Below the pieces are notes generated by a model. The model saw nothing but the letters and a program-made list of their open reading frames with translations, had not been told where the DNA came from and made no database searches. Below are positions 24,598-62,750 of a stretch of DNA of 64,000 nt, piece after piece; the first letter of the stretch is position 1, and every line of letters starts with the position of its first letter. This DNA is from Paragordius varius (lineage: Eukaryota > Animalia > Nematomorpha): the NCBI GenBank assembly GCA_964247055.1, contig OZ176050.1, forward strand, positions 10,788,001-10,852,000. Direction: 5' to 3'. The position numbers and the translations under genes are program-made.

Positions 24598-27500
24598 ATG
24601 GCTTTCAATCGTTATATTCAAGACGTAAATCTTTTTAAAAAATTATAACATATAGGTTTATAATGCATATATATCCAATGATGGATCCAAGTTATCAGTA
24701 AATTATGTTATATAAAATAGTTTTTAATTTCAATCAATAATGCGGTGTTTAATTATTATAACATTACACCCAGTTTGTTAAATGAGGCCGAACAATTGTT
24801 ACCTGACCCATACAAAGAAATAATTCCCTTACATTTAAAGTATAAAAAAAGGGTAAAAATAATTTTTAGATGTGTTAAAAATTTATGGGAGCGAAATTAT
24901 ACTGATTCTTTTGATTACCAAACATCACTGATACAAGTTTTTACCAAGTATTTGCAATCTAAAAATGATGAGAATTGGATGTTACCCGTTATGAATCAAA
25001 TTTGTTTGGATTTACGGAAATTAGCTTGCACAGTAAAATTTATATTGCTATTTTTTCTTCCCTATCAAGTTATATCATTCACACATTATTTGTGATTTGA
25101 TCTTAATATAATTAAAAAATAATAAAACATAAGTCAAAATAGCCTTATATTTTTTCCGATTTGTGGCTCTATTACTTTATTTTCTAATATAAAGCTTATG
25201 GCGCAACAATTTAACATAATAAATTTATTGATATGAAAGCGTTAACTATTCTTTTTGGCATGATATTTATATTCATTTAACACCCCAATAACTTTTTGGG
25301 TAGGTTAATATCTCAGAGCGATGAAATTTGATTATCTTAAAGAGTATTTAAGGTATTAAGCCGATCTTAGCAAATTCACAAACAAACCTCGAAAACAGTC
25401 TCCAAACTTTTATAAATGTGTGCAAAAAATACAATCTTACATTAAACCTCAACAAAACTAAAATTTTACATATCAACTCCCCTCATTCCTATGACTCGCT
25501 TCGGATTAATGGCGAAACAATTCAAGTAGTCAACGAATACACATACCTTGGAAGCATAATCAACAACTTAAGCTCCAGTTCCCAAGAAATAAGAAGACGC
25601 ATAGCTATCGCCAAATGCGCTCTATCCTCACACTACAAGTTATGGAAATCTCATGACATAACCCTTAAAACAAAAATCCGACTAGTAAATGCATTAATCT
25701 TTCCTATCATGTTATACGGGTGTGAAAGCTGGACTATCAAAAGTGAAGACGAAAAAAGAATAAACGCGTTTGAAATGTTTTGCTGGAGAAAGATACTTGG
25801 TATAACATGGAAGGACAAAATAAAGAATATCGACATTGTAAATAAAATTAACGCACAAACAACGCTTCGGGGTAAAATAATAAAACAAAAATTCGGTTAC
25901 TTTGGACACATTATTCGGGGCAATTCTTTGGAAAAGGATATTATGTTAGGAAAAGTAAATGGTAAGAGAGGAAGAGGCCGCAGACGTATTCGCTGGGTAG
26001 ACGAAATCTTATCACTTTCCAAATTGTCACTGCAAAAACTATCTCAAAAAGCTCACGACAGAACCGAATGGAGGAAGTTTTCCTACAAAATCGCTAATGG
26101 TCGATAACCGACTACAAGCTCAACAACAACAACAAATGCTTCCTTTAGCCTTTTTAGCGCATTACAAAAATGTAAAATTGTGAAAAATTCTCAATTTTTT
26201 TGCCGCCATTTTTTTCCATATTTTTTTAAAATTGCTATTGTAACAGGTAAATAAATGTATATTACGGTTAGAAAATGTACATAATTAATTTTAAAAAGTT
26301 TTCACATTTTACTACAAAAACTTGATATATTTTAATTTTATATCAGCTGTTAGTTTCAACCGTGTTTAGAGGTGTCCCAATTTTGAACTCTAGAAGTCGC
26401 AAAATTGCAATAAGTTTTTTAATCTAATACATGAGAACAACTGATAATTAAATTTTTCCTAATTCAAAACTGTAGTTTATTTAGAATATTGAGCTCTAGG
26501 ATATAAAACTACTCAAAATGTAAACTAAAACAAAAAAGTGAAAAGGTAATGAAGTGTTAAATTATTCAAAATTTGCAATATTTTTCCACTTTTTTTGGGC
26601 AGTTTGTAATTTAATCAAAAATATATTATTTATGATTTTAGGTCGAAACATATTACATAAAAGAAGGTCATCCTAAGCACGGATTGTATTTGGAGAAGGC
26701 TTCAGATACGCTTTTGGGATGTTTTCGCATATGTGCTACAGATAAGTAAATTTCCTAAGATTAAATCTTTAAAAATTATTTAAACCTATATAACGTTGGC
26801 CTTTTATATATAAATGCGTATCTATTTTTAAATTAGTGAGTAAATTAACCATTTTTATACTTTTTATAAAACTACAGTTTCTCATCTCCACAAACGTCAA
26901 AAAAGATGGGAATGCTCTTTCTTGTCAATCAATTATTCAAGATCTATTTTAAGGTAAACCCTTTACATATGACCTAGTTTTTTCAAGAAATGTATATTAT
27001 ATTTGGCATTTTTTATATGATTAATTCAAAAATATTTTTTGAAGATAAATAGACTCCCTTTATGCAAACCCCTGATCCGTGCCATTGATAATACTAAAAA
27101 TTTGGAAAATTACCCAAATTCTCAAGTTGTCACTTATAAGTAAACGCGTATTTTTATATTTTGTATTTTCAAATTTAATTGCGCAATTTTATAATTTAAA
27201 AAGCATATATAAAGTATGCATTTTAATGGTTGCTTATATCTCTTACTATAGTTGGGTATTTGCAACCACAGGAGTAGTGTATGGATAAAACAAAAAAATG
27301 TTAAATAAATAATTTTTTACTTTCCTGTATTACTTTGTTTATTTTATTCATAATTTACTTATTGTTTTTCCATACACTAGTGTGTTGTAAATTTCCCATT
27401 TATAGTGTGAAATAACAACCATTAAAATGCCTACTGTATATACAGTATGAGTAAGTATATATTGCCAGAAAGCTATTAATTATTGCCAAATAGCTAATAA

Positions 27501-30500
27501 CTTTCTAGCAATGTATACTTACTCATACTGTATGTATATATGTATAAATCACACTTGTTTTATTCAAGATTTTTTGTTGGTCGGAAAGCATTTTATGATT
27601 TTGATTATGAACGAGGTATGTATTTTTTATTATTTTTGAATGTTAACAAAACCAAATATTCCTATTTTAACATTTTTATAAAAATAGCTAATGAATTATT
27701 ATCGTACGCTTTTGAACACTGTGACAAACGATCAAAACGAAATATTCGAATGATTCTCATTTACCTTATTCCTGTCAAAATATTATTGGTTTTCATTTTT
27801 ACTTTTTACATTTTGTAAAATATCATATTAATTTTACTAATTTTAGGGTTATTTCCCCAGTCATTACATATTAGAGAAATACGATCTTTTAGCCTTTGAA
27901 CCAATTATTGAAGCGGTTAAGTAAGTTTTATCCGTGTTTTTTCCATAATCTATAACATATATAAACATTTTAAATTATTTTATTATATTTTTAATAAAAT
28001 TAATAGTAATATTTTAATAATTTTTAACATTATGTTTTACTTAATGTATATAAATAGAGTTACGATATTTTGTCTTAATGGTTTGTTTTTCAAAATAAAT
28101 ATTTTTGAATAAAAAACTCTATACATAAGGCAAATAAATAAAAAAAATTATGATCGAATAATATCCAATTTGTTGTTAATTTAATGTATAACATAACATT
28201 AATTTAGATGTGGAAACTTGGGGCAATTGGAAATGACAAAAGAGGCTAACAAAAAGTTTTTTGTTAAATCTGGCATATATCTTTTCCTTGACAAACTTAA
28301 AATGGTCACTTTCCGTAACCTGTTCAAAAAAGTGTATGTCGCTTATTTATATATCAATCTAATGTCGCTAAACTTGATATTTATTGCCTTATGAATCTCT
28401 TTTACATCATAAATAATTAATAAAGACAAAATTTAAAGAGTTAAGGAAAAGACAAATATTTTTTTCAAAACACAATTATATTTAAAACGATGATTTTTTA
28501 ATGTAACCTATTGTGTTGGATTACGAAATAAGGAATAGGAATGCTAATTGGTAATGCAATTTTATAATTTACAATTTTGTACATTAAGTTATAATATATA
28601 AACTGATCAATGATATAATTATATGCATTTTATTATTATTGTAGCAAAGATCGTTGTCGATTTATTGCTTTTTCGAAGGTGGATTTTCTCTAGTTTATTC
28701 GATTGTAAGTGAGTGATGTTAGCTTTTGTAAAGAGAGATTGGTTTCTTTGGTTAGGTTTTCGATCCAGCGCATCTTGCAGCGTCCACGTTTCCTGGATCC
28801 TTCGACCTTGCCTGTCATTAGTTGGATTCCAAGTCATTAGCTCTGGTAATGTGACCAAAGTATGATAATTTCATTTTGAGGCACATGCCAATCAGGTGTA
28901 TCTCGGGATATATTTTTTCAAGGATTACAGTGTTTTTTATTTTATCTTTCCAAGTGATTTGAAGTGCCTTCCGCCAGCACCAGATTTCGAAGGCGTTAAT
29001 GTATTTTTCGTCTACCTTTTTTATTGTCCAGCTTTCTGATGCATATAGCATGCTAGGAAATATTAGTAGGGCTTTAACTAAACGGATTTTTGTTTTAAGT
29101 TTGATGTCGTGTGATGACCATAGTTTATTATATTTTATCATTTTTGTCTTTGCAATTCCTATTCTTCTTTTAATGTCTGGGGTGCTGTTGTTAGTTGTAT
29201 TTATAAGACTGCCTAGGTAAGTGTATTGGGACACTACTTCTATTTGTTGGTTGTGAAAAGATAAGTTGTTATAGTGGTTATGAGCGTTTATAGTCATGAT
29301 TTTAGTTTTTTTAAAGTTGATCGTCAATCCAAATTTTTGACATTCGTTTGAGAATTCAGTTAGGAGTTTTTTCAAGTTGTCCACTGAGTTTGACAGCAGT
29401 ATGGTGTCATCAGCATAATGAAGTGATGATATAATATTGCCGGCAATGCTTGTACCATTAGTTTTATCTATTTCCCTAATACGCTTTTTATGCAGACGTT
29501 AAAAAGAGTATGTGAGAGGACACAACCTTGTCTTAAACTATTGTTCATTTGTACCCAGTTACTTGTGCCATGTGGGGTTTTTATGTTTAGTGATGAATTG
29601 GAATAGAGGGATTTAATGATGTTTAAAATGTGCTCTGAAACTCCCATCTGAGATAGTGCCCTCCACAGCGTGTCGTGTTTCACGCTGTCGAAGGCTTTTG
29701 TAAAATCAATGAAGCAGATGTGGGTTTCTTTCTGAAATTCAATTTGTTTTTCGAATATCCAACATATATTGCTGATCATGTCCCTGCATCCGCGATTGGA
29801 TCTAAATCCCGCTTGGGTATTAGAAAGTTCGGCTTCAATTATGCCTTGGATACGCCTGTGAATTATTTTGAGGAAAACTTTTGATGTTTGATTGATTAGC
29901 GCTATAGTTCTATAGTTGTTAAATAATTTAGGATCGCCTTTTTTCAAGATGGGGATGAGTATTGATTTGCACCAGTCTTGGGGGAATGAGGCGTGAGCAA
30001 ATATCTTTTGGAATAAGTCAGTTAGGATATGAATTGGGATAAAACGAATGAGTTCGGTTGGGATATCGTTGTACCCCTCCGATTTGTTGTTTAGGGAATG
30101 ATTGAGCGCCAATTCAACTTCTTCTTTGATGATCTGCGGGTCATGTTGATAGATATTACTGTTTTTGTCGGCGTTTTATAGGCTGGTGCCGTATAGTTTT
30201 ATAATACATATTGTTCCCATTGTTCCACCAGTGTTTTTTGTCCGTGATGATATCTCCATCTTCCTTTTTCATTGGGCCTTTGTAGATTTTAGACCTACGT
30301 GGAGCAATGTGATCTACGTCAGCAAAGTAGTTGTTGTTATGTTTAGCAGCGTTTTCTAGTTTTAAGCACAGCTGATTGTAGTGATCGTTTTTGTCTTTCC
30401 GAGCGCTTTTTTGGAACTCTGCGTTAAGTGATTTGTATTCTGCCATATTATTCTTGCATTTAGCTTGGCGCCGTTTGTCCGCTAAATCTAAACTTTTTTG

Positions 30501-31407
30501 TGATAGCTTAATTTTGTTATGATGGGATTTTTGGATAGGGATGCATTCTCTGGCTGTAGTACTAGGGATATTTTGTATTGTATTTCAAAGATTTTCAGCG
30601 TCATCGTCTATTTCGAGTGTTTTAAATCTGTTTTCAAGTAACAAAGGAAACTCGGTTTACAAAATATATTAGTTTTACTTTTTCCGTTTTGTCCTTATTA
30701 ATAATTACCGCTAATATAACGATTCTTTAGATTTAACATACTAAAAATGCATCAAATTGATATCCATGCATTTTTGGTGGCCCTAAAATTTGCTGGATAC
30801 GAAGAGGAAGATTGTGATCTCGATGAGGTTGAATGCTTACTCGCTAATCTAATTTACGAGGTATGTTGTGAATACAGTCAAATAAAATTATACTGACAAA
30901 ACGTAAAACACTAAAAAACTATATTTTTATCGCGATTTTTTTTAAATTAAACTCATTCAGTGTTTTGGGGCGCAAAATGAAATATTTAATGTAAATTGGA
31001 AACATACTACTCAATCATACAATTCACAATTATAATAACCTGTCTTTTTTTCCTAGTTGGTAACAACTGAGATTTAATTTGGTTAAATTTTTTTAAAACC
31101 CTAAACAATTTTAAATCATTTTTTAAGGTAATATCATATTATATTTTTATAAATGAACAATTTCAAAATATTTTTGAATACCTTATTGTTTCAATAAAAT
31201 GAGTTTTGAACATTAAAATAAAGTCCAAACATATATTTATATTTTTTCTCGTTTTCACACAAGTTTAATGATCCACTTTAAAATTCCTATTGTCATTAAT
31301 GCGATTAATTGACTAAATAGGGGAAAATTAAAGGCTACATTTCTCATCAACATCGCAAATTAGTTGTGAGTAAACTCAACGCTTTCCCTTCCCTCACAAA
31401 TCAATGA
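24598..31407 (+). CDS. PCID2: PCI domain-containing protein 2 (TREX-2 / Thp1 family), 13 exons, 396 aa
   Basis: Exons 24598-24624, 24656-24697, 24721-24839, 24870-25032, 26642-26745, 26878-26953, 27045-27139, 27569-27615, 27688-27788, 27847-27920, 28208-28333, 30731-30860 and 31321-31407 total 1191 nt in phase. Motifs [64 protein letters not shown] and [11 protein letters not shown]. Confidence 0.96.
25360..26135 (+). mobile_element. 5'-truncated RTE-clade LINE in PCID2 intron 4
   Basis: ORF 25418-26107 has the post-RT RTE motifs [49 protein letters not shown] and [13 protein letters not shown]. Ends in a (CAA)5 tail. Confidence 0.93.
28628..30655 (-). mobile_element. 5'-truncated, frameshifted RTE-clade LINE in PCID2 intron 11
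   Basis: Reverse transcriptase motifs [42 protein letters not shown] and HYADD (after a 1-nt frameshift near 29475). C-terminal ESWTIK...WCWRK. (TAA)n tail at 28628-28640. Confidence 0.95.
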
Positions 31408-32977: not shown

Positions 32978-35900
32978 TTAATGACATATTATAAATATTT
33001 TTCTTACATATGGCGATGAAGCTTGTCGAGATTTCTCTTTCTCGATTATTTTGAGACTTTTTTCCGGCGAAAATTTAAGGACGACACTTAAAACTTTGGC
33101 CATAGTCTGTTAATAATTAAATTAATTTATTTACAGTGGACTTCCTTTAATGACCGCGCTTATAATGTTGGTTTCATGTTCTTTTAACACAAACTTACTA
33201 ATTTTGATTGTTATACCCTCATAAGAGCCAAAATTAAATTAACAACTTTTTCAAAATATCTGTAAAAAGTTGAATTCAATAAATATTATATTTTATAAAT
33301 TTTACTAAAAAAATATGCGGATAATGATCCATATATTTTACAAAATCGAGGTTATTATCGGGGGAAGGGAAGAATCCACACGGTATGTTATTAAAAATAA
33401 AAAAACGCGTGAAATATTTTTATTACCAATGGTTCTTGGCCCATAATATATTCGTAAACAATTTTTCGCAAATATTCCAATTCCGATGTCTCTGGAAATA
33501 ATGGAGGGATTTGATTAATACTACCGCTGTTACTTCCGTCAGATATCTTTCGACTGTACATGAGGAGTTGTCTGGGATCATATTTTTGATTATCTATTTA
33601 TATAATAAATAAAATAAGGTCCTTAAATGTTTCAACACAATCAAACATATATTTTCAAGAATCAAATAATTTTTCCAACAATCAAAATAAGTTGCCCAAT
33701 AACTTTTTTATGTTTGACAAAGATTACTTGTAGTAATCGAAATATTATAATAAATTTATATAATTTTTGCTGAATTATTCCATATATAATAACTTTTTTA
33801 TGTTTCCAACAATCAACACATTTTAAACACCAATAATTATCATATTAAAATCAAATTAAATAGAAGTCAATCAAACTAACCTTATATATTAAACTAAAAC
33901 AGATTTTTATCAGATGAAAATAAATTAACATTAAACTATAATATGGGCGAAAAAAATTCAAACTTACTATTATAAATGTTTTGTGAGTAAGAGTTGGGTG
34001 AATTAAGGGTTGAATTAGAATTCAATGAAATATTATCCGTATTATGCATATTATGTGAATCAAAAGAGAGGATATTTGGTGTCATTGCCAAATTTCTAAT
34101 TATTCCTGTGGTCGGGCTTGCCATGGAATCCTCGAGTGATGCCAAAGAATTAAGTTGTGATCGCAAAAATGGATGCTATTTTAACATAAAATATTATCAG
34201 TCTAAAAACAATTTTTTATTTGGATAAATAAAAATATGACCATTTTTGTTAGTTTATGTATGTGTCATTCATTCAGATAACAAATTTTTATTGTAAGATA
34301 TATATTTTATATATAGCCAATTCAATAAACCCAAATGTCAAAATGATAGGTCTGTGATTAATGTTATTTATATGTAAAAATTCAAGCTTTTTTTCGATGA
34401 CAATACACCTAAAAATTTATTTTTATATTACTTTAAAATAAATTTCTATAAACTAACAGAAATTTAATAAAGGAAAATATCATATTAAAATTTACTTGGT
34501 TATTAGTAATGGCACTATCTACCGGAGAAAGGTTGGCTGAATTATCCCAAGAAATTGTGGAATCTCTGTGTAAAAAAAACAAATTGAAAAAAAAAAATTA
34601 TATAAAACAAAATTTTGTTTTAAATTAATATATGCTATAAAAAGCTATTACATATTAGGCCCGGAATGATTGTTTAAAAGGTTTTCATTGATTTCTTCAT
34701 GTTCCACATAAGATTTTTGTGTTTGAGGAGACAACAATGCTTGATTTGTATTTATCTAAATTATTTTTATTAATTTGTACCAATTATGTAAAATGTGCAT
34801 AATTTAAGAAACATTTATGAAAAGTGAGAAAAATGTCTAATGGAAAAATAAATATTTCTGTCCTTAAAAAATTAATGAAAATCATCGCAAGCGGATAGTA
34901 TATATCCAAATTAATTATTTTTTCCATATCATTTCCCAAAATAGTGTTTAAAACTTAACAGAACTCTATAAAGATAGAAAATAATATTTAAATAATTGGT
35001 TATAACAGGCTGTAAGAGATAAAAACAATACTATCCAATAAAAACAAATTTATTACCATATAAATTAAATTTAAAAACAAAAAGTTATCGTGAATTGAAA
35101 AATTTGTGAATATAACAATAAGTTAAAATCCCAAAATAATAATAAAAGAATAACAAGTGTATCGATACTAAAACTAATAATAAAACTAAACATTATTTAT
35201 AAATATGGCTAAAATTTAATAAAAAACCATAGTAACAAAAAAATTAAATTAATTCCCTTCATAAAATTAAGAGTTTTTCTATGGATAAAAGTAATAAATT
35301 CAGTATAATTTAGATTAGAAAATTGAAACTTATTTAAAAAAAATAAAGCAATGTAAACCTGCTCATTTAGCAGAGCGTTTGGGGACGAGGGTTGTTCATG
35401 TAATATGGTAAGAGCTTGTTGGAGTAATTGATTGATATGATTTTTCCACATTTGATCCTATTTGAATTTAAATAATGCAAATGTTACCATATCTTATTAA
35501 ATTAAGTTATAAAGGCAAACACGTAAAATATAAGTGGAATTTGAGTAAAAAAGCAAACTTAAAACAGTAAAACATGGCCATTTTTTTATGGCGGTCATAC
35601 ACCCATATTGATATAGTTTATATGAGTAGTGGTGTTTATAAAAAAATATAAATAACCCCGAACCCTATATTTTATAATCCTTAATACTGTATCCATAGTA
35701 ACTATAAGTGAGAATAAAAATTTTAAAACATAGTTAACCATAGAAATGACAGTGTTGTTTTGCGTTTTTACAATGGTTTAAATTAAATGATTCATTTAAT
35801 GGATATATATATTGTGATCTTAGAACAATGTAATCATTATATCGATAATATTCGGAAATATGTGTTGTTTTATTTATGATTTAAATCCTTTATAATATTT

Positions 35901-38900
35901 GTCTTCTACTAAAATAAATATTCATTACTATTTCATATTGGATATAAGGACCAAAATCAGCCCAAAGTGTGTTTGGTTCTAAAAGTTTGTTGAATTCATT
36001 GATATCATTTTCACGCATCTCCATTAAACGATTAACAATGATTTGTAATAAGCTTAAAACATAAAAACGAGTAATGATTGTAAATTAATTTTAAACAAAT
36101 TATTGTATCTCATTTTCAAATATGTTATGCAATTGACTTACTTTATTACTCAAAATGTAAAACAAAATATTAGAAGGATTATGGATATCAAAAAACTAAT
36201 TTTGCAAATCAAGCGATTAAATGAACGAAAAAATTAAATTTAAATTAAACAAAAAATTATATAAATATAAACTTATTTATAATCATTCTGACACATTGAT
36301 CAAGGTAAAATTGTAATTTAGGCCCCAATGAAATCAACTGATCTCCTTTCAGGTTTAACAAGTTTTTAAGGTCGGCAATTTCCCTTTCTCTAGCCTAAAA
36401 GAAATAAAATACCATAATATTGGGCAAAATTACTGTTCATTTTATACACTTTGTTAGAGTTATTAAAAAAATATTTGAATTATAACATTTATATAAAAAT
36501 TAAAAAATTTGCGGATCATATATTTTATAAATTAGTCTTATAATGAGAAAAAATCTTGGGTAATATGTGCTTATATACCAAAAGGGTTATTCATAAAATT
36601 ATTGCTGTAATCTTAGAATTATTAAAATACTTCAAGTTTCGTGTCATACTCATCTATAGTACGTTTCATACATTCGTCCGATTGATGTAATATGGCATAA
36701 ATATCTTCTTGGTCATTAAAAGAGGGAGATTTTAGCTTTTGAACATTCGTATTAGTTATCAATTCTGATAATTGACATTGCTGAAAAGAAAAATATAACG
36801 ATTGGATAAGTTTTAAAATTAAAAAATAATTTTTAAATATTTTTTCTAGCATTTTTACCACAATTTATAATATAAAGTGTTATACAACTTCTTGATTCAT
36901 TTTAGTATTTGCATTGTTTAGATTTGATAAGGTTAGATGGGATTTGGAATTCTTGATAGATTCCAATTCTTTTGCATGATTTACTAATGTTTCCTGATAC
37001 AAATTCCGTAAATCTCCAATGTTTTGATTACATTTTTTGATTACCAGATTTTTTTCTAACATTGCATCATCCAAATCAGCTATTCTAAAGTAACAACCGT
37101 AAAAATATTTATTAAATAAAATACTTCAATGGTAATAGTATATAAAATAGAATGAGAAGTAATGTATATAATAATCCCAACCTTTTTTCAAAATCATCCT
37201 TTAATGTTTTCATATTGATTGCATGGTCTTGCATTAGGAGAGTTCGTTCCTTTTCTAACCCAATAACCTTTTCATCCAATTCCTCAGTTATGAGTTGATT
37301 TTCCTTAAAATCGTTCAACAGCGTTTGGTATAGGGCAGACATATCTTTATTCGCCTTAGTTAATTCATCAATTTGGTGCTGATATTTATCGCATGTCAAA
37401 GTATGATCACGCCTTACACTGTTTAAAACATTTTGTAATTCATTGTGATGAGTAGTTTGGTAAGCCCGTTGTATTTGTTCAAAAAGTTGGTTATATTCAT
37501 CACGTATTGTTTTAAGTCTAGTTTGAGCTAATGTTTGTAAACTTTGAAGGACAGATTTAACCGTCTTAATTTCTCCATCTAATGCAGCTAATGAAGTATT
37601 CATGAATTGATTTTTGGAATGTAAAGCTTTGTTCTTTGCAATAATTTGCGTGAAATTAGAGATAATTTTGGCTTCCACTCTTTCTATATGTGCTTCAAGC
37701 GTTAAAATACGCTTTTTAAGCTGTTTAACCGAAAAATTAGATGTGCTAGAATCGATTGAATTTTCATTTAAATAAGGTGAAAGAAGTTGAGCAATTTTAT
37801 CGTTTTCATTGTCTTCACCCACTAATGGCAGGTAAAAAGTAGCAAAACCGCCTAAAATATTCGGCAATAATTCAACTTTTACTAAATCTTTTATAGTTTC
37901 ATCTTTTTGCTTAAATAGGGTTATAACATTTTGTGTTTGCATAGACTCCAAAGTATTTTGATGTGTAGCATTCAAAGTCCTCATAGTTTCTAGAGTTTTG
38001 TCAAGTTCAGATTGTAATTCTTTTATTTTTTGATCATCCCAAATTTTTTGTGCATTTAACTCATTTATTTCGGTTAAGATGGGAGTTATATCAACGAAAG
38101 GTATAGCGTCCAAAGCAACATCACATAATTCAGGTTGAGGTAATGATAGTGTTTGTGTCATAACATTAATAGTGTTAGCGAATGCATTTGTTTGATTGTC
38201 ACCTATAGAATATTGCATATAAAAAGTAGTAATAATTTAAAATTTATTAATCTGATAAAGATTTAGAGAAAATAGTAATCTAGATATATAGTATTAATAA
38301 ATTAAAAGGGTTAAAAAAATCTTGTTTTTATATTTGATAAATTATAGCAGGGACGCTTAAATTAAGCATTAATCAGTAATGTTTTTCGCAACATTAAAAA
38401 TGCAATGTCGTTTTTTTCGTCTCATACCAAAAAAACCAAAATTAAATAAACATAAAACCAATACCATAGCATAATAACAAATATTTGCAATCTTTGGAAA
38501 CTATTTTATCGTAAAAAATAATTCTTAATAAAAACTATATAAAAATCATATTACTGGATTCCTTATTATCTGTAGTTATAGCTTCTGTGTCGGAAGAATC
38601 GGTTATGTCCTCGTCCAACAAATCTTTTTCATTAACCTATAAAATAATATTTCTATTATATATTTCTGATTTAGTTTTTTTGAATTCGTTATCATAATGA
38701 TACGGGGTGAAATAATTCAACCCGAATATTTTAATTTTATAGTCTTAAACGGGACAAGAAAGGAACGAATTCTAACCTCTTGGATGTGAAAACCCTTTTT
38801 AAATAGTATATAAGCTTTTTATTTTTGTGCAAGTTTGTATTTAAGCTGGACGGAGAATACACTCTCCGAGTAGGGTTTATTTTTGGAGTAATACTGCATA

Positions 38901-41900
38901 ATTTTCAAAAGATTTAATTTCTTCATAACTAAATCGTTGCGTGAGTTTTATATTATCAAATAAAATAGAGTAAAATCGTATAATCAACATAAAAATTGAT
39001 ATTTAACAATAATATAGAATTATCAAAAATTACCATTGTATTTTTGTATTTTTTAAGTACACTTCGATTAAGGGCTAATTGACCCTAGAAAATAAATGAG
39101 AGAAATTTGTTTACGTGAGGTTATTTATCAAACATACGAATTTTTTATAATATAATAAAACATTGCATGGCTCTCCAATGAAATATTTTAGCATGAAATA
39201 ATATTAAATTATTTCGAAAGAATAATTTTTGTGAAACCTATTTTATAGAGAAAATAATTTAAATATATCTAGGTGCCATAAACTCCGAATACCATTTTTA
39301 AATATGTACTTTTTATTACCCAAACAAATTTGCATTATTTTTATTATTTTCTTATAAGTTGAACGATGTAAATTTAACATAAATATTATTTGGCGTTAAA
39401 AGTTTAAATATATATTTATAAAATAAATTTAATATGCAAAATTGATAAAACCTTATTAATGAATTGATTTTGCATGAATTGTAATCGTTCTCGCAATTGG
39501 CCACATTCATCTTCTAATTCTTTGATCCTTTCCCACGGGTCAGGTCCAAGCGGTATTTGTTTTACTAAAAAGTTAACAATTAATTAAATTTATTTACATA
39601 AAAATGATTTACATAACTGACCAATTATTTTTGCATAAAAAATGTAAGATGGATTAGTTATATATACATACAATCAATTCAAATTCACCCTTAAACAATT
39701 CAAATTCTCCCTAAAAATAAATTATGTGTTTTAGGGCTAATATAACTCATTTATATGGAATATATCTTTATGGTTTGATTTATTATTTTTTCAGTAGTAT
39801 ATAAAATTAAACAAAATTTCATTTTTTTTAAATATAAAAAAATATAGGTAATTTTTAATCTTAAAAAACAGATAATTTATTTTAGGGTAAATTTAAATTG
39901 TTCCAGGGTGTAAATGTTATGCTAATATCACATATTTACAGTCATGTATGTTTAGAATTGTCAGATATACGTTTTTACTTGATTTTATTTTGTTTTTAAT
40001 TGTTTACAATAAAAAAGCTATTATTATTTTAATGCTTAAAAATGCACTTGTTGAAAGTTGACATATCAAACATTAAAACAATTAAAAACAAATTATAATC
40101 ATTTAAAAACGAATTTCTGTCAATTCTACATATACATGACTGTAAATGATTTTAGAGTAAAAAATACGGCTTGAATACATTTTAATAATAAATAAGTAAC
40201 AAACTTGCAAAAGATTTTTGACAAAAATAAGTTTCCTTTAAACTAACTGCTGTAAAACATACTTGGCTCAAAATTTAACTTATTAGAGCGTAATCTATCA
40301 AGCGCTTCCATTAATTCAGATTCGGTTTTTGATTCCGCGTGATTTTCAACATTTTCATTGGTTGATTCATCGTTTATCTCATCTTTAGCTATTATAGGAG
40401 GTTCAATAGTAATGGGCGAAAGGGAAACGTCACTCCATTCATTCCAATTTTCACATGCAATATTTTGGTTTGATGTTTCGCTATCTTTGGTAAAATGATA
40501 TTATATCAATTAAGGTTAAAATGTATACACAGTATATTATTATATAAAATATAATTGGTAAAAGTTAAATGAAATAGATAAATACATTATATATAATTTT
40601 ATGATTTATACATTATATAATATAATAAATTTCTATAAAAATACTTATATTGTCAGTTTCTTTCGTTGTTTGATCTTTTGCATTTAGTGCTTTTTGCATA
40701 ATTTCAACCTAGATAAAATATAAAAAATTTGATCCAAAATAATTAATTAAATTAACATTGAAACCAAATTAAACAAAAAACAAATGTACATTATGATTTA
40801 ATTAAAAAATTATTAAACATACATAATATATTGATATTAAGTAGTTTGTCCTAAAAAGGGCAAACTAAATAGCTTCAGTTTATAATTAAAGTTGTGATTA
40901 TGGTTTCAGTTTTAACGGCCTTAATATATTTTTATACGATGTCAATGTAGCCACAAAAATATAATATATAAATATGTTGATTTTTTCTAAAAAACTCTGA
41001 TAAAAGACAACAGTATATGGAAAAATTGGGGCGCATTGGAAATAATCTCGTTTTCTAAGATTAGAATAATAGACTCTATGTTTGGCAATTATTTGCTAAA
41101 TTAGTATAAATTATCTAAAATAAATTAAAAAATTAACCATTGGATCCCTTTGGAACACCAGTTAAAATTTTAAAAACGATCCTGTTTTTTTAACATTTTT
41201 CACTTAAAAAATAGTCTCAAAACTCGGGTATAATCTTTATAAAAAAATGCCCCAAAATATTATGTTCCAGAATACAAATTGCGTATGGCATAAAACATTA
41301 TTAGTCCATGAAAGAATAAAAAAATGGTTTTTAAAAAAAAATAAGTCTAGTTGTATACACGCATATCCATAATCCCTTGTTTTTTTTTTCAAAGAAAAAC
41401 ATTTTTTATTCTTTTATGGACTATTATTATTTTATGCCATACGCTACTGTAATTTATGACATATTTTACATCTTGCTGTAGTTTATGGATTTGTGCATCT
41501 TTATCCTCCAACATGGAACGAAATGAAAATTCTAAATGTTCTTTGGCTTGTTGATTCAATTGAGATGCCTCCTGCATTTCTTGTATTCTGCGTAACGTTT
41601 TATCTTGAAATTGACTCAAGGTATTCTGAGAAATTTTAATATATAAAAATCATAATTATCAGTTTTTTAATATTAAAATAAGAATAAGAATTTGGTAATA
41701 AAATAAAAAACTAGATCATTTAAAAAAGATTTGATAAAAATAGGTGAAAAGGGAAATATTAAGAAAATATAAGGACAAACACCGCTCTAATCAAAAATTC
41801 AGTAATAAAGTTACAGAGAATTAATATTGCAGGATACTTTTAGATTAAATTAATATTAGTGTTTTGGTCATAATTTAATATATATAAACTGTAATCCAAA

Positions 41901-42856
41901 AACTATACTAAAATAAAAAAAGGACGGTAAATAAAAATATATAAGATTAAAAAATAAAATCAATCAATAACTAATAATTAATATATTAGCTGATTTATTG
42001 TAAAAACAAAAAAACACTTGAATTGAATATACTTATTATTTTAAATTAAAATTGGTATTTTCGTATGATTATGTCCGATAAATATAAAATTATATAAAAA
42101 GGAATTATATATTATAACCAATAAGTTTGAATAACCATAAATTTGATAAATAAAAAACAGTAGGAACGACCTAAAAAATGGTTTAAAATGTTATTAACAC
42201 AAAGACGTATAATTATAATCCGTTTTATGGATATAATAAAAAAGTTTGAATTTACCTGCATTTTTTCACGTTCCTTTTCCAATGTTTTATAGGCATAGGT
42301 TACCTATTTGTTATAAGGAGTAAATTATTAAATGTAAAACATAAAGTATAAAATATAAATTACTTCTGAGTATCTTCCGCGATATTTGGTTAATTGAGTC
42401 AAAACTTTTTTTACTTTATAAAATAACTGTTCTTTGCTAAAAACATCTAAATTAGCCATATCCTGAACATAGAGATCCTCACCAAATTCGCTACCGCATT
42501 CACTTTCAATATCGGATTGTGGCTAAAATAAAAATCATATATGTGTACAATGTTTATATTAAAAAAATAATCTGATATAAATTATATAATCACTATGTAT
42601 TTTGGTTTCGCGATATTGAAAGTTTTAATTTCAGGGGAGGATGATGTAGGCAGAATTTGGGATAATGAAGTATTGAATTCGCAATAATTCGTAGAACCCA
42701 GAGTGTTGGGCGTTGTGGATTCGACTTCTTTATTTTCATGTATTTCCTGGCAATAAATTTTAATAATACCAGTAATTTTGGCAATATAGGTAAATCTTTA
42801 ATAATCTCCAAATTTTCACCGGAGTCTTCGAGTTTCTTTTTTAAATTCTTGAACAT
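32978..42856 (-). CDS. GOLGA4: Golgin-245 / GOLGA4-like coiled-coil GRIP-domain golgin, multi-exon
   Basis: N-terminus MFKNLKKKL. KYRGRYSE-VTYAYKTLEKEREKMQ-NTLSQFQDKTLRRIQE...AKEHLE...LEDKD matches the GOLGA4 N-terminal block. GRIP domain ELEYLRKIVYEYIMGQE-TMAKVLSVVLKF. Firm exons: 42856-42770, 42746-42594, 42522-42364, 42303-42256, 41625-41470, 38202-37182, 33593-33427 and 33106-~33008. Several middle exons and the last exon are approximate. Confidence 0.88.
39668..39916. mobile_element. Foldback-like MITE with 21-bp subterminal repeats, copy 2
   Basis: Same arms and core as 13603-13905. Lies in a GOLGA4 intron next to a Tc1-type MITE. Confidence 0.75.
39939..40142. mobile_element. 204-bp Tc1/mariner-type MITE, copy 1
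   Basis: TIRs CAGTCATGTAT.T.TAGAATTG.CAGA, flanked by TA on both sides. Near-identical same-length copy at 46789-46992. Confidence 0.9.
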
Positions 42857-46992: not shown

Positions 46993-47494
46993 TAAGTGGT
47001 CGCTTATTTTACATATATAGCACACAGTAGTTTATGGAAAAAAAGAAAGGGAAAATTGTTTATTCAACATTTTGTTGTTTATTTTCCACACACTATTGTG
47101 TTGCATATTGCCCAACTATAGTGTAATATAAGCTACCATTATAATGCATACTGTGCATTGGATTTAAATATATTAGTCGAGAAGCTTACAAAAACTAGAA
47201 AAATGGTAATGGTATTGAACTAGTATAAAATATGTGTAAATATGCCATTAGAATTCTAAAAATGTTATAAAACCAAACAAAATAAATTTAACCGTTTGAA
47301 TAGGTAAAATAATTAATATTATGAGTAATAAATTCTCCTTTTTTAAATTTATTGCACTATTATGCTTTATATTAATTTTCTAAGAAAACTACATATTGAA
47401 ATTTTAGACTAGTATTTTTTGAAGCAGTCACACTAGCGGTCATAAATGCATTCATGCCAGCCTAGACTTTTTATAACCTTTTATCCAACAATAT

Positions 47495-47689
47495 TAGGCG
47501 TGATGGTATAGTAGGTAGGGCGACGGACTCTAACTCTGCGTGCCAGAGTTCGAACCCCGAAACTACGCATTTTTTCCATCATCACTGTCAGCCCTGGGCA
47601 GGCGAGTGTTAAAGCCTTCACATGTCCGGATACTATTTAAGTCCTTACCCTTTAATAAAAAAGGAAAAAAGAGACTCTAAACTGTAATA
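47495..47689 (+). mobile_element. tRNA-derived SINE, copy 1, with a 16-bp TSD
   Basis: Head GGCGTGATGGTATAGTAGGTAGG (A box) ... GAGTTCGAACCCC (B box). TSD TTTTATCCAACAATAT at 47479-47494 and 47690-47705. Second copy at 5661-5847. Confidence 0.9.
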
Positions 47690-47802
47690 TTTTATCCAAC
47701 AATATCCTATCATTACTTTTTACCAATCTGGTCTAACATTTTTCCCACCGTTTTAAACAAAATCTTTTAAACCTATTAATTTACCCTATTCCCATGGATA
47801 TA

Positions 47803-50008
<2,206 letters not shown>

Positions 50009-50429
50009 TTCGTTAATACCACGACTTGGCAAAAATCAATCGAAGTGAATTGTTATAGATAACGGGTTAACAATATGTTATAAAAAAGTAGCTTCGATGT
50101 TATGATATATTTTTAGAGCGTATAGTAAATATATCATAATTAATATATAAATAAGTATTTAAAATGTTAGCTTCAAACAAGTTTTCGGGAAACAATTTGG
50201 ATCCATTGTCCAAATTCCGACAAGGGTTACTAAACCGTATTAAAATTTTGGCCCCCGTGCAATAGGGGTGTTTTTAAAAAATGCATCCCAAAATTTGACA
50301 CGTTTTTAAAATATGGGGACCAAGTCGGTTTAAAAAATAAATTTTATCTATTTAAGAAAAGGGTTACTGACATTTTTTCTATAAGCCTATCAGTGATGCC
50401 CTATCTCCCGAAAAAAGGGTTTTATTTAA

Positions 50430-51009
50430 CACTTGGATACAACACATTCATTTTAGTCCTTCGATTCAAATTGGGGTAGTTAAATACCCCAGACCTGTTT
50501 AAAATTAAATTATTTAAAAAATATGGAAGGAATCAAAACCATTGCAAAATTTTGCACCTATATAACATTAATAAACCAAAATATATCAAAAGTTTTATTC
50601 AAAAATACTTAATATTACTTATTTTAAGCTAAAAGAGAGAGGTAAAAATTTAGTCAACCTGACATCTGTGCAATGACAAAATTGAAAAATATTACAAAAT
50701 AAACGGCTTTTTCTATTTTTATCAATGTTATATGTAATTTAAATAAGATATTAGCTTAAAAATTTCCCTTAATATTAAATGAATACGATATTTTGCAAAA
50801 AAAATTAAAATAAAAATGGCGTCGAAGTAGTTTGAGATGGAATTTTTTTTCAAAACAAAATTTTATTTACATATTTTGGCATATTTATGTAATTTTTATA
50901 AGGATAGAAGCATAAATTTAAATTGGGACCGTTTCATTCAATAGTTTTTTTAAAATCCTAATTTAAATTTAGGCTGGGGTATTTAGATACCCCAATTTGA
51001 ATCGAAGTG
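50430..51009. mobile_element. piggyBac-type MITE, copy 1
   Basis: TTAA at both ends (50426-50429 and 51010-51013). Termini CACTTGGATAC / GAATCGAAGTG. Internal inverted repeat TTCGATTCAAATTGGGGTA..TAAATACCCCAG is offset by about 27 nt on the left only. Confidence 0.8.
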
Positions 51010-52947
51010 TTAATCAATTTCAAAACAGACCTATTCGCATTTTAAAATCGATTTTTTTAGATTTTGCAAATGCTCAATGACAGAACTCCTAATTTTACCA
51101 GTTAGCTCCTTAAGAAAATGGCTTTTTTACCATATATTCAAAAAAACTATAGGGAACAAGTTAAGCCATATTCAAATTCAGAAGTTTATATTTTTTAGCA
51201 TTTATTAATTTGATGAGCCATTATTAAACAATGCCCATTAGTTCCCGATTTCTATTAACTCATTATATTTTTTGCACAGATTATATTTTAGGATAGTTCT
51301 ATACCCTAGAGTTTAAACTTGTAAATAAACTACTGTTTGGAAAGATGTTTTGGTTATAATTTAATTTTGAACTTTGTAATCCATTACTAGAAAAAAAACT
51401 TTATATTTTTTACAGTTTTTATTTTCAGGTCTCTAAAACTGGGAGAGCCCCAAAACACTATTATGGTCACTGATTTTATCGATAAATATCAAGAGCTTGC
51501 AGGTAAAATGTACCCTGAAATTCTAAAGTTAATTATATGTCTTTCTAATCATAATCATATATATTGGGAAGAAAATGGCTGCGAAAAAGTTTAAAATGAG
51601 AAATTTTAACACTAAAAAAATGTTTGAAGCATGCACCTCAAAAACTTATACTGCATGTTTTTATATATGTGTTACCTTTGTGATATTATTATTTTAAATC
51701 GCTCTAATGTATAAACTACCTAAGGTAAATAAGTCGACGTTTTTTAAATATATGTTGAGGCAATATACTGGGAAGCGAGCAGGCTCCGAATTCAATAATC
51801 AATACATTATTTAAAATGCGTAATAGTGACTTAGCTATTTATTAAAGCTCCTCAGCCCGATCTCTTTAAAATGGATTTTTGAATATATTGGTTTAGAAAC
51901 GATTTTTCGGAGAACCGGTAATAAAATATGATAATGATTTTTTTATTTTACCAGCGCCAACGGTTTCTGAACTATTTTTTAATTAACCATAATTGACCTC
52001 CATCGTAAAAAATAAGGTGAGCCATTAGAACTCCATTATAGCTATGATTTGCCGAAACATTCATTTTAAAAATATCAGGTTAACCCAATTCTATGGTTGT
52101 TATAGGCTGATTCTTACACGTTCCCTGCTTAATTCAAGTCATGTCGAAGTTTTTTATGACCCTTAGATTACTCCTAGCTTATGTGTAAAAATATTTGATC
52201 GAAATCTTAGACCAATTTTTCGGACAACGATAATCTTATAAAATGATTTATAGGTCAATATTAAATCAATGCGATCAATTTTAAGTAATAATAAAATTAG
52301 ACTGAATGCAAATTTTCTAATGTAAAACATGTAAAAATTTAATTCAGTCGTTTTGGCAACATCGAAGCCTGTCACTTGTTAAATAATGTATAATTGACTT
52401 ACAGATTTTTGACTTTTATCTTTTTAGTATTGCTTAAAGGCGTGATAATATAGTGGAGAGAGCCAAACTCTTACACTATGTGTTGGGTATGCCAGAGTGT
52501 TCTTCCCGAAATTGAGTAATTTATCAATCATCACCGTCAGCTCCAGGCAGTGGGGTTTAGATGTTTCACAGTTTTACTCTAACCCTTTATGTTTGTATAG
52601 GATTGTTAACTCAATGAGTTTTAAATTTGATAAACATTTTATGTATATAATATTGTATATGTCTTACGGATTAACATTTATTTTTTATAAAACTAAAATG
52701 GGACGCTGTAAACGTTTAAATTATAAGCAACCAATTAGTGCTAAATTCTCCAGGGCACTGTCTAATTGCCAAATTAACGTGCAATCATGAAACAATACCT
52801 TATTGCCAAGTAGTAAGGTCTAATTTTAAGGTAGTTTTATATTTAGAAAAACCAATAGTAGTATTTTGTTTTTTTATAATAACATAATAATTGGTAAAAA
52901 AGCGAATACAATTATTTATTAGAAACTAACATTTTCCAATTAGCGAG

Positions 52948-52986
<39 letters not shown>

Positions 52987-53511: not shown

Positions 53512-53534
53512 GCACAGTGTCCACAATAGAATAA

Positions 53535-57299: not shown

Positions 57300-58471
57300 A
57301 TGGAATGTCAATCCTGTCACACAGATTTGAGCGGGAAAGAATACGTTGAAAAAAAGGATAAAAATTATTGCCTTCCTTGTTATGATCAAAAATTTGCGCA
57401 TAAATGCAAAGAATGTGGGAACCTTATCTCAGCTGGACAAAAGGTTTTTATTTCCACAAAATATTTTTTCATTAACTGAATAATGTAATAAAAAATAAAG
57501 GAATTGAATGCTTGAGATTTTTTAAAAAATGGAAATCAATTTCCTTTGTTTGTGATCTTGTTATTTGTATCAAAAAATACTGCTGGCAAAATACATTATG
57601 GGCAAAATAGTTGGTTTTGTTTTCAATCTTGATCTCTTTTGTTTTATTTTCTTGCCAATAAAAAATCAATTAAACTTTCTATTATTGATAATTGGCAACA
57701 GTATAATTCAGTCCCAAAAATTAGTTTATCCATCTATTTTTTCATTAAATTAATTGTTGTGTCGCACATTTTGATATCAACTATTAATTTAAATTAATAT
57801 ATGCCTCCAATACTGGTTTCATTAGTTATTAATATCTTAAAAAATCTTTCAGTTTTTTTCAAAATTTGTCCGTTTCAGTGGCGTTTTAAGTACTTATTTT
57901 AATGACTAGCCAAATATAACATTTACAGTTCAAATTCACCCTTAAACAATTCAAATTTACCCTTAAACTATTCAAATTCACCCTCGAACAATTCAAACTT
58001 AAAATAGATGTTTTTTAAGATTAAAAATTACCTATATTTTTTATATTTTTTGAAAATGGAATCTCGTTTAAAAATAATATAATACTGAAAAAATAAAAAC
58101 AAATTATTTTTAGGGTGAATTTGAATTGTTCATTGAATTGTTCAAGGGTGAATTTAAATTGTAAATGGTAAACAATGTCGATTTGACCTCCGTGTTTATA
58201 GCACCGTGGAAAAAGGTTTAAAATTAAATAGTCGAGTTTGTATGCAAAAGACTTTACTAATCAATTTTTGAGATAACCTTTAATGGCATCATTTTTTACA
58301 AAAAGTGTTTTAATTAATGTTCATGTATATTTTTTCCCGGAAAAATATATTTTTAATCAATATGTGATGAAAATTGAGCAATCGCATCCTATTTAGCATT
58401 AATAATAATAAAAAAGCGTGATAAAGGCATAATTTTTTGGGCATATATTTTAAAAAAACAAAAACTGCTTA

Positions 58472-58508
<37 letters not shown>

Positions 58509-60780
58509 TATATTAACTAAATAATTAAGCTTAAATCATCTACCTCCGAAAAATTATTTATTATGCGTGGGTAAGTGCGACTATTGTTGACATATTGACA
58601 TAAAAAACTAGGCAAGTCTCAATCTAATTCTATATATGATATTAAGGCATTTCGCTATCGGAAAAGCAGTTACAATTATTATTCAATACAATTACCGCTC
58701 TTAGAAACTCGCATATTCAGTTTGCTGGAACTATTTTATAACCGGTTTTAAATACCAACCAAACAAATATCCCTTTAAATACCTAAATATATACCACTTC
58801 TATTTTAAATTGCTAAAAGACATAAATAAAAAATTTAAGCGGTCAAACTAGTCCAGAGAAAAGGAATTTTTATTAGGGCTTCTCAGCCAAAAGACATTAC
58901 TCCAGTCAAAATTGTTTCCATGAAAAATATACAATTTAATTGTTTTCTTTATTATAAAAAGGTAGAAACTAAATATGATTGGACAGATAAGGGTTTTCTA
59001 AACTTGCCTCCAACGATATAAAAATTTATGCGATTGTAGGGGTTTCGAAACATCACCTAGTAATATAGTTCGACTTTAACATTCTTCCACCATGTCTTCG
59101 AAATTTTTCATTACCATAAATACTTAACAGATTTTTTTATATTTTTATGAATTTTTATTGTTTACTGAAGGAATTAATATATGGCGACGAGGGATATTAT
59201 CATGAAAAATGTTTCCGATGCTCAATGTGCAAACAACCCTTAGATGTCAACAATTACGAAACGTATGACAAAAAACCAGTATGTCAAAAATGTTATGAGA
59301 GTACTATTCCAGGCGGAGGGATGTGTCCTGGCTGCAACCAATCCCTAAAATCCGGTTATCATTTGGTTTAAAATAAATATGTATGCGAAACTCGTAAGCT
59401 AAATTTTTTCCAATCTTTTTTCCATAACGCAATAAATATTATATAATCTATAAATACGAATAAATCAATACAAATAACAACCTATTCAAACATTGGAAAC
59501 ATTTAGTTGAAAAAAAACCAAACATAAGAATTAGACTGCCGGATATTTTAAACTATATGAGAAACTTAAGATTTAACCAAAATTATTTAGGACAATCCAA
59601 ATTGGAGTACAAAGGTCGGCAATGGCACGAGGGATGTTTCGTTTGTTCTCAATGTAAGAAGCCTTTGGGTAATGAACGATTTTACACCAAGGATGACAAA
59701 AACATTTGCTTACCATGTTATCAAAAAAACTTTGCTCAAAAATGTGCTAAATGCGGAAAAGTATTAGTTGATTATTTTTTAATATGTTTTATTATAACAA
59801 AACATATTATGCGTCAGTATCAAAGTTCATTTTATTAAACACGTTTTTGAAAGCAAATTATTTTTTTTATTACTAAATTACTTACTGTTATGTTTTAAAC
59901 CGGGAATATTTTAATTATAGGTTTGTTTAACTGTACATTTAGATTATCATTAATTTAATTATTAAAACAGGTTAACCTAGACAATTTTCAATAGTTTATA
60001 TTAGTCCATAAACATAGCATTCTTGCAAAATAGTTCGATTTAGATTAAATATCCATGATTCTCATGTAAAACCCTTAATAATTTTAATATGGTTATAGCC
60101 AATAACTGACGTAGGCGTTAAGTCCAAAAATGACGTTTACCACAAAGAATGTTTTACTTGCTATGGTTGTGGAACGGAACTTTCGGGCAAAAGCGTTGCC
60201 GCAAAAGACAACAAACCCTACTGTGTCGATTGTTATGCTAAAATGTTTGCTAATCGATGTGCCGCTTGTAAACAACCCATATCAGGTAAAAGTAATTTTG
60301 TCTTTGATTAAAATTTGCATATTTCTAAAAAAAATTTTATCTTTGGTTTTAAGCTCGAATAAAAAATGAGCAGAAATTAACGATAATAATTAATAAAGCA
60401 TGTTTAATTAAAAGTGTAAAATTAATCATGTGAAAGTATTATTTGGTTGAAAAAATTTGCAATCTGGTTTAAGATAGGTAGGTAAAACAAAACATACCCT
60501 ACCTTTGTCTGTGGCCTTTTTTATATCTTTTTTATTATATTATTTTAAAAATAAATAAATAAATCTTTTCCATGGAATATTATTTTAATTAAAATTATTT
60601 GTTTCTAAAATATATATAAATATTTTTTTAGGTGCTGGAGGTATGCAATATGTAACCTATAAAGATCGACATTGGCATACGCAATGTTTTAATTGCACCG
60701 TGTGTGGAAAAAATTTGGAGAATAGTGGTTTCAATCTCAAAGATCAAAATATAGTATGTCCCGAGTGTAATAAAAAATAA
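57300..60780 (+). CDS. FHL2: Four-and-a-half LIM domains protein (FHL2/limpet-like), 5 coding exons, 277 aa
   Basis: Exons 57300-57443, 59171-59354, 59591-59760, 60099-60285 and 60632-60780 total 834 nt. A half LIM followed by four LIM domains, with EYKGRQWHEGCF, YHKECF, PISGAGG..Y..YKDRHWH..CFNC and terminal CPEC. Paralog identity within the FHL family is approximate. Confidence 0.93.
57920..58168. mobile_element. Foldback-like MITE with 21-bp subterminal repeats, copy 3 (inverted)
   Basis: catttacagttcaaattcaccctt ... aagggtgaatttaaattgtaaatgg. The core is the reverse complement of copies 1 and 2. Lies in FHL2 intron 1. Confidence 0.8.
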
Positions 60781-61080: not shown

Positions 61081-62750
61081 TCATTTCAATATGTAATCCT
61101 TGTTTATATGGACATCTTTTAGAGATTTTGTTCCATTCTTATCTACCAATTTCACCTTAAATGCCGGCAAGTTGACTAATAATCGTTTTTGAATCTAATT
61201 CGTTAACAATAAATATGTAATTTTTTCCAATAGAAGTATGGAATATATCAGATAAAACCAAATGTACAACCTCATCAATCGCTTTTATTAGTAATTCATA
61301 AGCCTCGGTTTCATTCATGTCTATACATTTATAGTAAAAAGAAGAAATGTAACAAAAATAAATATTTAATAGCTGGTTATATAGCATAATGTTTTATCCA
61401 TAAAATTAGAAAACCTTTTCTAATAAATTTTTAAAAAATGCGCATAAGGTAACAAATTATTTTACCGGGTTTGTGATATCGATCAAGGATAGAGTTTGCA
61501 AAAAATGCTCCATAACCCTGAGCTCCGAACGGAACCGTGAGTAAAGAAGCCAAATAATCCATAAAGTAAAGTGAACTCTCATTTGTTACAGTATTGTACC
61601 CAGCTATCATTGAGTTTACTTGGTAGGGATTCGACTTAAATAATATAAAATTTATAATTCTTAATTTTTACGTAAAACCCTTAAATTTCTTTTTTCCATC
61701 CTACATAAATTGAAAAAGTAAATGATAAGGAAGCTACATAATATTTTTTATAAAAACAATCTTAGCCAATTATAACCCCCGTTTAATTGTTTTATCCGCC
61801 AAAAAACTCCAATTTAGGTTATATTTTTTAGAAATTTACTATTATATAAATAACCATACAAAAAGTAAGGAATAATTTTATTTATAAAATTTATTTAAGA
61901 AAATTTCAAGATAAAATATTCGTTGGAGATAGAATTATTCAAAAATAAACACATCTAAGTAATATTGATACTTTTAAACCCTAAATTTCAGTTTTAAAAT
62001 CTATTAAACGGGACAAATCAATTTTAGTTCCGATTCGTTACATAAAAAGCGTTTAAAATTTCTTATTAAGCAAAAAGTGAAAATAAAGTAACTTGTTTAA
62101 AAGTGTATAAACCTTTAAAAAATTATACGCAATAATATGAAGTGGTCTTATTTTTAATCTATAAAGTTTCGGCAATCTTTAGCAAAATAACAGAGACATT
62201 GCTAGAGGTAAGAAAAAAATAAACTATATTGTACTAATGAATCGAACTTATTTATGTAAATGGTGCATTTATTATATAAAACTATTTTGACGAAGAAAAT
62301 TATTTGAATTTGAAATAGTTAAAATTAATGGTGTTTTTATGGTTATGTTAGGTTTGATCGGATAACCTTTAACTAAATATTTAAAAATGGTTTAAAAAAT
62401 AAATATAATAATTATAACTACCGAACGTAAGGCTTCAGCTAAAGTTTTACGCGCAAAATGTGCCACATGTGAAGGGTCAACATCATATCCTAAAATATTA
62501 GTTGAAGTTAACCATTTCTGAATTTATATAATTGCATGTTTTTAGAAATATATTCTGCGAATTCATGACTATCCCCCTTTTCGCCAACAACGCCTATCAT
62601 CACACTACTGTTGATATTATACATTTTTTGACTGTCTATACAATTATATAATATATTACCGTTTTTTATGACCAAAATGCTATGGGTTTCGGTAGCATCT
62701 GAGGCAAGGAGAACAAAGTCTTTGCAGCGAATACCGATTATACACTCCAT
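61081..62750 (-). CDS. PSMB2: Proteasome subunit beta type-2 (beta-4), 6 exons, 204 aa
   Basis: Exons 62750-62660, 62635-62513, 62489-62422, 61634-61466, 61320-61271 and 61194-61081 total 615 nt. [77 protein letters not shown] and QKRLLVNLPAFKVKLVDKNG. Confidence 0.97.

Follow-up and report, generated by a model that had tools for sequence, protein, structure and literature searches.

We analysed a 64-kb (kilobase) stretch of contig OZ176050.1, referred to below as the window, in which introns of only 23–31 nucleotides (nt), here called tiny introns, lie at the start of genes. The window is 25–31% G+C throughout and contains animal-type genes amid RTE-like reverse-transcriptase fragments and other repeats; tRNA and Rfam scans of the 64 kb gave no match. 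All genes were read on both strands, and exon boundaries were set by a script that checked the GT/AG borders, joined the exons and translated them to the stop. The resulting sample consists of nine complete gene models, each open to its stop codon, and 57 introns from this one window. All 57 (14 tiny and 43 other introns) are of the GT-AG type.

Six genes carry tiny introns, which are given here with their window coordinates, their lengths and the genomic offset of their start from the ATG. Rab1 (215 amino acids, aa; 47803–50008, minus strand, ATG at 50008) has six introns, the first four of which are tiny: 49962–49985 (24 nt, offset 23), 49866–49888 (23 nt, offset 120), 49794–49817 (24 nt, offset 191) and 49718–49745 (28 nt, offset 263). 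They are followed by introns of 67 and 1392 nt. PCID2 (396 aa, 12 introns; 24598–31407, plus strand) begins with three tiny introns at 24625–24655 (31 nt, offset 27), 24698–24720 (23 nt, offset 100) and 24840–24869 (30 nt, offset 242), after which come introns of 1609, 132, 91, 429, 72, 58, 287, 2397 and 460 nt in that order. The first two of the five introns of PSMB2 (204 aa; 61081–62750, minus strand, ATG at 62750) are located at 62636–62659 (24 nt, offset 91) and 62490–62512 (23 nt, offset 238), with introns of 787, 145 and 76 nt behind them.

The remaining three of these genes are less well characterized. The GOLGA4-like golgin (1174 aa, 20 introns; 32978–42856, minus strand, ATG at 42856) has a tiny intron 1 at 42747–42769 (23 nt, offset 87) and otherwise introns of 60–761 nt. 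It was named from motifs, the Pfam search with its GRIP-bearing exon being empty and the homologue search with its 340-aa exon finding none. The gene labelled 'Myb' (224 aa; 23744–24543, minus strand, ATG at 24543) has tiny introns at 24274–24298 (25 nt, offset 245) and 24171–24196 (26 nt, offset 347), followed by a 74-nt intron at 23782–23855, all placed by the reading frame. From its motifs the preliminary description of this DNA had called it a Myb gene; the gene model and both tiny introns were reproduced; a Pfam search finds no Myb or other domain in it. The sixth gene is an orphan (154 aa; 6551–7063, minus strand, ATG at 7063) with a signal-peptide-like start, whose model joins three open reading frames (ORFs) via two AT-rich GT-AG segments at 6980–7002 (23 nt, offset 61) and 6777–6801 (25 nt, offset 262), again placed by the reading frame.

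'Myb' on the minus strand and PCID2 on the plus strand are arranged head to head (window 24543–24598) with their ATGs 54 nt apart, and 5 of the 14 tiny introns are found within 350 nt either side of this common start region. In front of the PCID2 ATG there is a strong acceptor-like motif, a T-run and CAG, whose end is 5 nt upstream.

The introns of the window fall into two length classes. Tiny introns measure 23 nt (five introns), 24 nt (three), 25 nt (two), 26, 28, 30 and 31 nt, with a median of 24 nt and 8 of the 14 at 23 or 24 nt. The other 43 introns extend from 58 to 2397 nt, the shortest being 58, 60, 67, 71, 72, 74 and 76 nt, and the range of 32–57 nt is empty among the 57 introns. Inspected by eye in this small sample, most donors read GTA(A/T) and most acceptors TAG in both classes.

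The short class is strictly polarized toward the 5' end in the window. All 14 tiny introns start between 23 and 347 nt from the ATG, and our rebuilt models give offsets identical to those of the preliminary description, which had placed 14 introns of 23–31 nt within 347 nt of the ATG. Its span of 24625–62659 leaves out the orphan (6551–7063) and 'Myb' (23744–24543) genes, both of which it had counted; the offsets themselves are right. It had further stated that no mapped intron measures 32–57 nt and that none shorter than 58 nt lies further downstream. This was based on about 25 longer introns; the number mapped here is 43, and the statement holds over all of them, in agreement with the proposed two regimes of 23–31 nt and at least 58 nt. 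Tiny introns are strongly associated with a genomic offset of at most 350 nt (14 inside and 0 outside, against 4 and 39 for the other introns; Fisher's exact test, p = 4e-10), and with offsets counted along the coding sequence the p value is 5e-9.

Four longer introns also start within 350 nt of the ATG: 71 nt (GOLGA4-like intron 2, +263), 787 nt (PSMB2 intron 3, +329), 1727 nt (intron 1 of an FHL-type gene, +144) and 2070 nt (a gene of unknown identity, +164). All four had been listed before and were reproduced. Three genes (FHL, CHGN-like and the unknown gene) have no tiny intron. Tiny introns are thus allowed and not obligatory in the proximal zone, as had been proposed.

The order of the introns is equally regular. 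In all six genes having any, the tiny introns are introns 1 to k, forming unbroken runs of one to four, and none is located behind a longer intron. If intron order were random, the probability of finding the tiny ones first would be 1/220 for PCID2, 1/15 for Rab1, 1/10 for PSMB2, 1/20 for the golgin and 1/3 for 'Myb', or 5e-7 jointly. Limiting the test to the three best supported genes (PCID2, Rab1 and PSMB2) gives p = 3e-5.

The three genes lacking tiny introns are all on the plus strand. The FHL-type four-and-a-half-LIM gene (277 aa; 57300–60780, ATG at 57300) has introns of 1727 nt (at +144), 236, 338 and 346 nt. The unknown gene (270 aa; 8540–11422, ATG at 8540) is a two-exon ORF with a single intron at 8704–10773 (2070 nt, at +164), for which searches of Pfam, for word-sharing homologues and for Atlas neighbours were all negative. 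The CHGN-like glycosyltransferase gene (14637–19680, ATG at 14637; Pfam CHGN) has introns of 415, 1500, 302 and about 957 nt, the first at +622.

The CHGN-like protein is the only lineage-informative protein that we placed. Among 1.8 billion representatives it matches best CAK9297421.1 from the hairworm Gordionus sp. m RMFG-2023 (40% identity, colinear, 474 aa). An affinity to hairworms is thus supported by one gene, as a single best match and not a phylogeny. In the published Gordionus genome G+C amounts to 26.93% and repeats to 63.8%, and the G+C content of the window agrees with the former value. Exact look-ups of one window ORF and of the Gordionus protein matched no contig.

We then asked how well each tiny intron is supported. 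Seven of the 14 (the four of Rab1, the two of PSMB2 and PCID2 intron 3) are needed for a gap-free alignment to profiles or proteins. The Rab1 exons align with no gap to the Pfam Ras profile, exon 2 covering 1–20, exons 3 and 4 together (32 aa) 21–52, exon 5 53–84, exon 6 85–128 and exon 7 129–161. This fit verifies all six Rab1 introns, including the four tiny ones. In PSMB2, the exons follow the Pfam Proteasome profile colinearly, and reading through intron 1 produces a single exact gap of eight residues against a PSMB2 fragment of Schistosoma mattheei. PCID2 introns 1 and 2 are supported by the reading frame and presumably also fit the human N-terminus. Reading through PCID2 intron 3 produces an exact gap of 10 residues against human PCID2 (PDB 8r7j_B). 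For the GOLGA4-like gene, the frame left unspliced at intron 1 stops 3 nt before the next donor.

If retained, 12 of the 14 tiny introns give a frameshift or an in-frame stop. Four have a length that is a multiple of three, and two of these are stop-free, namely PSMB2 intron 1 (24 nt) and PCID2 intron 3 (30 nt), whose retention adds 8 and 10 residues, respectively. ORF scanners read straight through both (62636–62659 and 24840–24869). On sequence alone, from which their excision is inferred, we consider the 14 tiny introns to be probable spliceosomal introns of the canonical (U2-type) GT-AG kind.

Tiny introns might also be hidden in distal exons. Any such intron with a length not divisible by three would break the ORF, and none is required behind the first longer intron in any gene. 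We further searched all exons (9.7 kb) for GT..AG segments, 18–36 nt long, that are as AT-rich as the real tiny introns. The scan yielded three candidates with a length divisible by three: part of PCID2 exon 6 that is conserved coding sequence, a segment too short at 18 nt, and a stretch that is intronic by alignment with Gordionus. The distal exons compared for colinearity with profiles or homologues were those of Rab1, PSMB2 and the CHGN-like gene, and they contain no insertions of 7–11 residues at AT-rich GT..AG sites; the coiled-coil exons of the GOLGA4-like gene are poorly conserved and have no usable homologue. Hidden distal tiny introns therefore appear unlikely in the window, and missed introns of this kind, which the preliminary description had named as a possible refutation, were found neither by the exon scan nor by the colinearity checks.

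Several candidate tiny introns were rejected. In the GOLGA4-like gene, candidate introns at 40262 (27 nt), 35358 (30 nt) and 33963 (28 nt) lead into sequence that is non-coding-like or meets a stop. Two candidates in exon 1 of the CHGN-like gene were discarded because this exon is uninterrupted as an ORF and colinear with Gordionus.

A comparable architecture has been published for flatworms. The intron lengths of Opisthorchis felineus have maxima at 37 nt, 90 nt and about 3 kb, and microintrons below 75 nt make up 34% of the introns (Ershov et al., 2019, BMC Genomics, PMC6530080). In liver flukes and other flatworms, microintrons cluster together near the transcription start, and the authors suggest that intron definition is preferred over exon definition (PMC6530080). 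Splice sites nearer to the consensus and a lost polypyrimidine tract also belong to this flatworm architecture. Common to these genomes and the window are a discrete, very short class next to a second short peak and kilobase introns, a repeat-rich genome, adjoining microintrons, a 5' preference and the failure of default gene finders to detect them (PMC6530080). The two systems differ in three respects. The flatworm peak is at 37 nt, within a class below 75 nt, whereas the introns described here measure 23–31 nt with a median of 24 nt and are about a third shorter. Flukes show a statistical enrichment near the start, whereas the order in the window is absolute (14 of 14). The flatworm hosts are platyhelminths, whereas the closest protein match here, for one gene, is a hairworm.

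Schistosoma mansoni, in a different phylum, is said in its 2009 genome paper to have small 5' and large 3' introns, a position-dependent intron size like the one seen here. In ciliates and in chlorarachniophyte nucleomorphs nearly all known introns are tiny, in a narrow range of about 15–30 nt; these share the ruler-like narrow length with the window but are non-animal systems with no known 5' polarity. The dicyemid Dicyema japonicum has a mean intron length of 38 bp genome-wide (Lu et al., 2019, PMC6736024). Nearly all of its introns are short and no positional rule has been described for it, whereas 43 of the 57 introns here measure 58–2397 nt. The general eukaryotic rule is that first introns are longer (Bradnam and Korf, 2008, PMC2518113). 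Dependence on rank is common to this rule and to the window, but the sign is reversed here, first introns being the shortest, as the preliminary description had recognized. Its view that the pattern is undescribed does not hold, given the published clustering of flatworm microintrons near the transcription start (PMC6530080). The window represents a shorter version, in another phylum, of this 5'-clustered microintron architecture. A literature search linking Nematomorpha to short introns, intron size or spliced leaders found no paper.

We propose, with a probability of roughly 0.55, that the runs of microintrons beginning at intron 1 are a flatworm-type 5' architecture in Nematomorpha, in which two modes of intron recognition would exist and the switch between them would occur at the first long intron. 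The first mode would be fixed in length, ruler-like and intron-defined, recognizing the 5' splice site together with the branch/3' site as a single unit. This mode would be active only during co-transcriptional splicing from the capped first exon, within the uninterrupted run that precedes the first long intron. The second mode would be the standard one, needing room for the simultaneous binding of U1 and U2/U2AF, which would set a floor of about 58 nt, and it would take over once the first long intron forces exon definition. Two such modes would explain both the empty 32–57 nt gap and the absence of any microintron behind a longer intron. The polarity would have arisen by differential evolution of length and not by new insertions, as intron positions look ancestral; in Rab1, five of the six presumably match those of the human gene.

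Several points weigh against this proposal. Five tiny introns (two in the orphan, two in 'Myb' and one in the GOLGA4-like gene) are supported by frame logic only and are plausible but not proven. Chance AT-rich GT..AG segments joining short ORFs are common, with about 80 in the window, and generic ORF-joining scans for tiny introns are too noisy for stand-alone use. The order rule, by which no tiny intron follows a longer one, and a pure limit on distance from the start fit the window equally well. Finally, the sequencing runs listed as containing the window are DNA-like, with none recorded as RNA. Three runs (X6–X8) that bear the species label of these DNA runs and were assumed to be RNA contain none of the sampled window words. 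Compared with the Rab1 region (47001–52800) at 80% likeness, they match over no more than 38–83 nt of conserved Rab motifs, at less than 90% identity, and lack the Rab1 of this genome altogether. These matches probably stem from other Rab genes or from another organism; the label of the runs probably covers a different organism (a cryptic species, a host or a mislabel).

Alternatively, the pattern may be purely evolutionary. All introns would once have been short, distal ones would have been inflated by transposons or local duplication, and a promoter-proximal island of a few hundred nt would have been kept compact by selection against insertions close to the promoter. The genome is indeed repeat-rich, with RTE-type fragments in PCID2 introns 4 and 11 and a very high-copy repeat at 50.3–51.0 kb; the Gordionus genome consists of 63.8% repeats, and 'Myb' and PCID2 form a compact head-to-head pair with 54 nt between the ATGs. 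This explanation nevertheless expects some distal introns to be left at 23–31 nt or within the 32–57 nt gap, and there are none among 43. Eleven distal or later introns are only 58–108 nt long and contain no recognizable transposon, yet none of the 43 is below 58 nt; transposon inflation alone is therefore insufficient. Similarly, introns of 58–76 nt are not tied to a position (PCID2 introns 8 and 9; PSMB2 intron 5), so that a lack of transposon insertions alone does not explain why proximal introns are small. We consider this explanation unlikely.

Concerning the repeats themselves, RTE-like fragments at 25352–26104 (plus strand) and 28621–30584 (minus strand), in opposite orientations, make up much of PCID2 introns 4 (1609 nt) and 11 (2397 nt). 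A run labelled as another organism (X3) has contigs identical to the window. In this run the very high-copy repeat at 50300–51070 reaches a summed contig depth of 10,000–20,000, compared with about 5 in neighbouring single-copy DNA, and shows many rearranged joints. Repeat copies at 5743–6045 (minus strand) and 47466–47636 (plus strand) have a short ORF in common and probably belong to a dispersed element.

Another explanation is a permissive zone close to the cap or promoter and defined by physical distance from the 5' end, for example through the cap-binding complex helping U1 or through the early state of RNA polymerase II, within which introns could come in any order. The preliminary description had proposed such a zone, next to coupling to trans-splicing and a position-dependent deletion bias as possible causes. 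The confinement of all 14 tiny introns to within 347 nt of the ATG (Fisher's p = 4e-10) is what such a zone would produce; the ATGs are true starts since the N-termini match homologues, and the flukes show enrichment near the transcription start (PMC6530080). Conversely, four long introns lie inside the zone and no tiny intron comes after them, so that the order rule fits just as well, and the distances are counted from the ATG and not from transcription start sites. We regard a zone set by distance as rather improbable.

Two further explanations are far weaker. Quality control could be responsible if the splicing of tiny introns is less reliable and such introns can be tolerated only near the 5' end, where retention leads to an early stop and efficient nonsense-mediated decay; comparable selection is known for Paramecium introns, and 12 of the 14 tiny introns cause a frameshift or in-frame stop if retained, but two of the four with a length divisible by three are stop-free, which is about the chance expectation and gives no depletion signal in a sample that is far too small; we regard this explanation as very improbable. 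We likewise give little credence to a sampling artefact, in which distal in-frame, stop-free tiny introns were missed or some of the claimed ones are chance GT..AG segments: two real tiny introns (PSMB2 intron 1 and PCID2 intron 3) are indeed invisible to ORF scanning, the GOLGA4-like exons are a poorly conserved coiled coil lacking a usable homologue and chance candidates are frequent in non-coding DNA, but the distal exons that were compared (Rab1, PSMB2, CHGN-like gene) follow profiles or homologues colinearly, the exon scan left no intron-like segment of a length divisible by three, and the order test holds (p = 3e-5) with the three best-supported genes alone.

Introns of 23–31 nt are among the shortest proposed for any animal. 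Their fluke-like 5' layout, occurring in a genome of ecdysozoan type, points to convergence and thereby to a mechanistic cause. It is possible, and we suggest it only tentatively, that hairworms and flatworms, which are unrelated lineages of parasitic worms with genomes swollen by repeats, independently evolved an identical second splicing mode gated by position, in which introns of about 24 nt (or about 37 nt) would be excised by a ruler-type mechanism that operates behind the cap and is turned off after the first long intron. If true, such a convergent mode would represent a general, undescribed constraint linking recognition of the first exon to minimal intron length.

There are also consequences for annotation. 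Default minimum intron lengths in gene finders and read mappers would lead to truncated or broken 5' gene ends, and in-frame cases, PSMB2 intron 1 among them, escape ORF-based reading. For Gordionus montsenyensis the genome paper gives a BUSCO completeness of 71.6% and says nothing about introns. Should very short introns exist at the 5' ends of hairworm genes, some of the genes scored as 'missing' could simply have escaped annotation, which we offer as a suggestion and not as a result. Given this low completeness and the lack of any treatment of introns, we therefore suggest that claims of gene loss in hairworms merit re-examination with microintron-aware methods.

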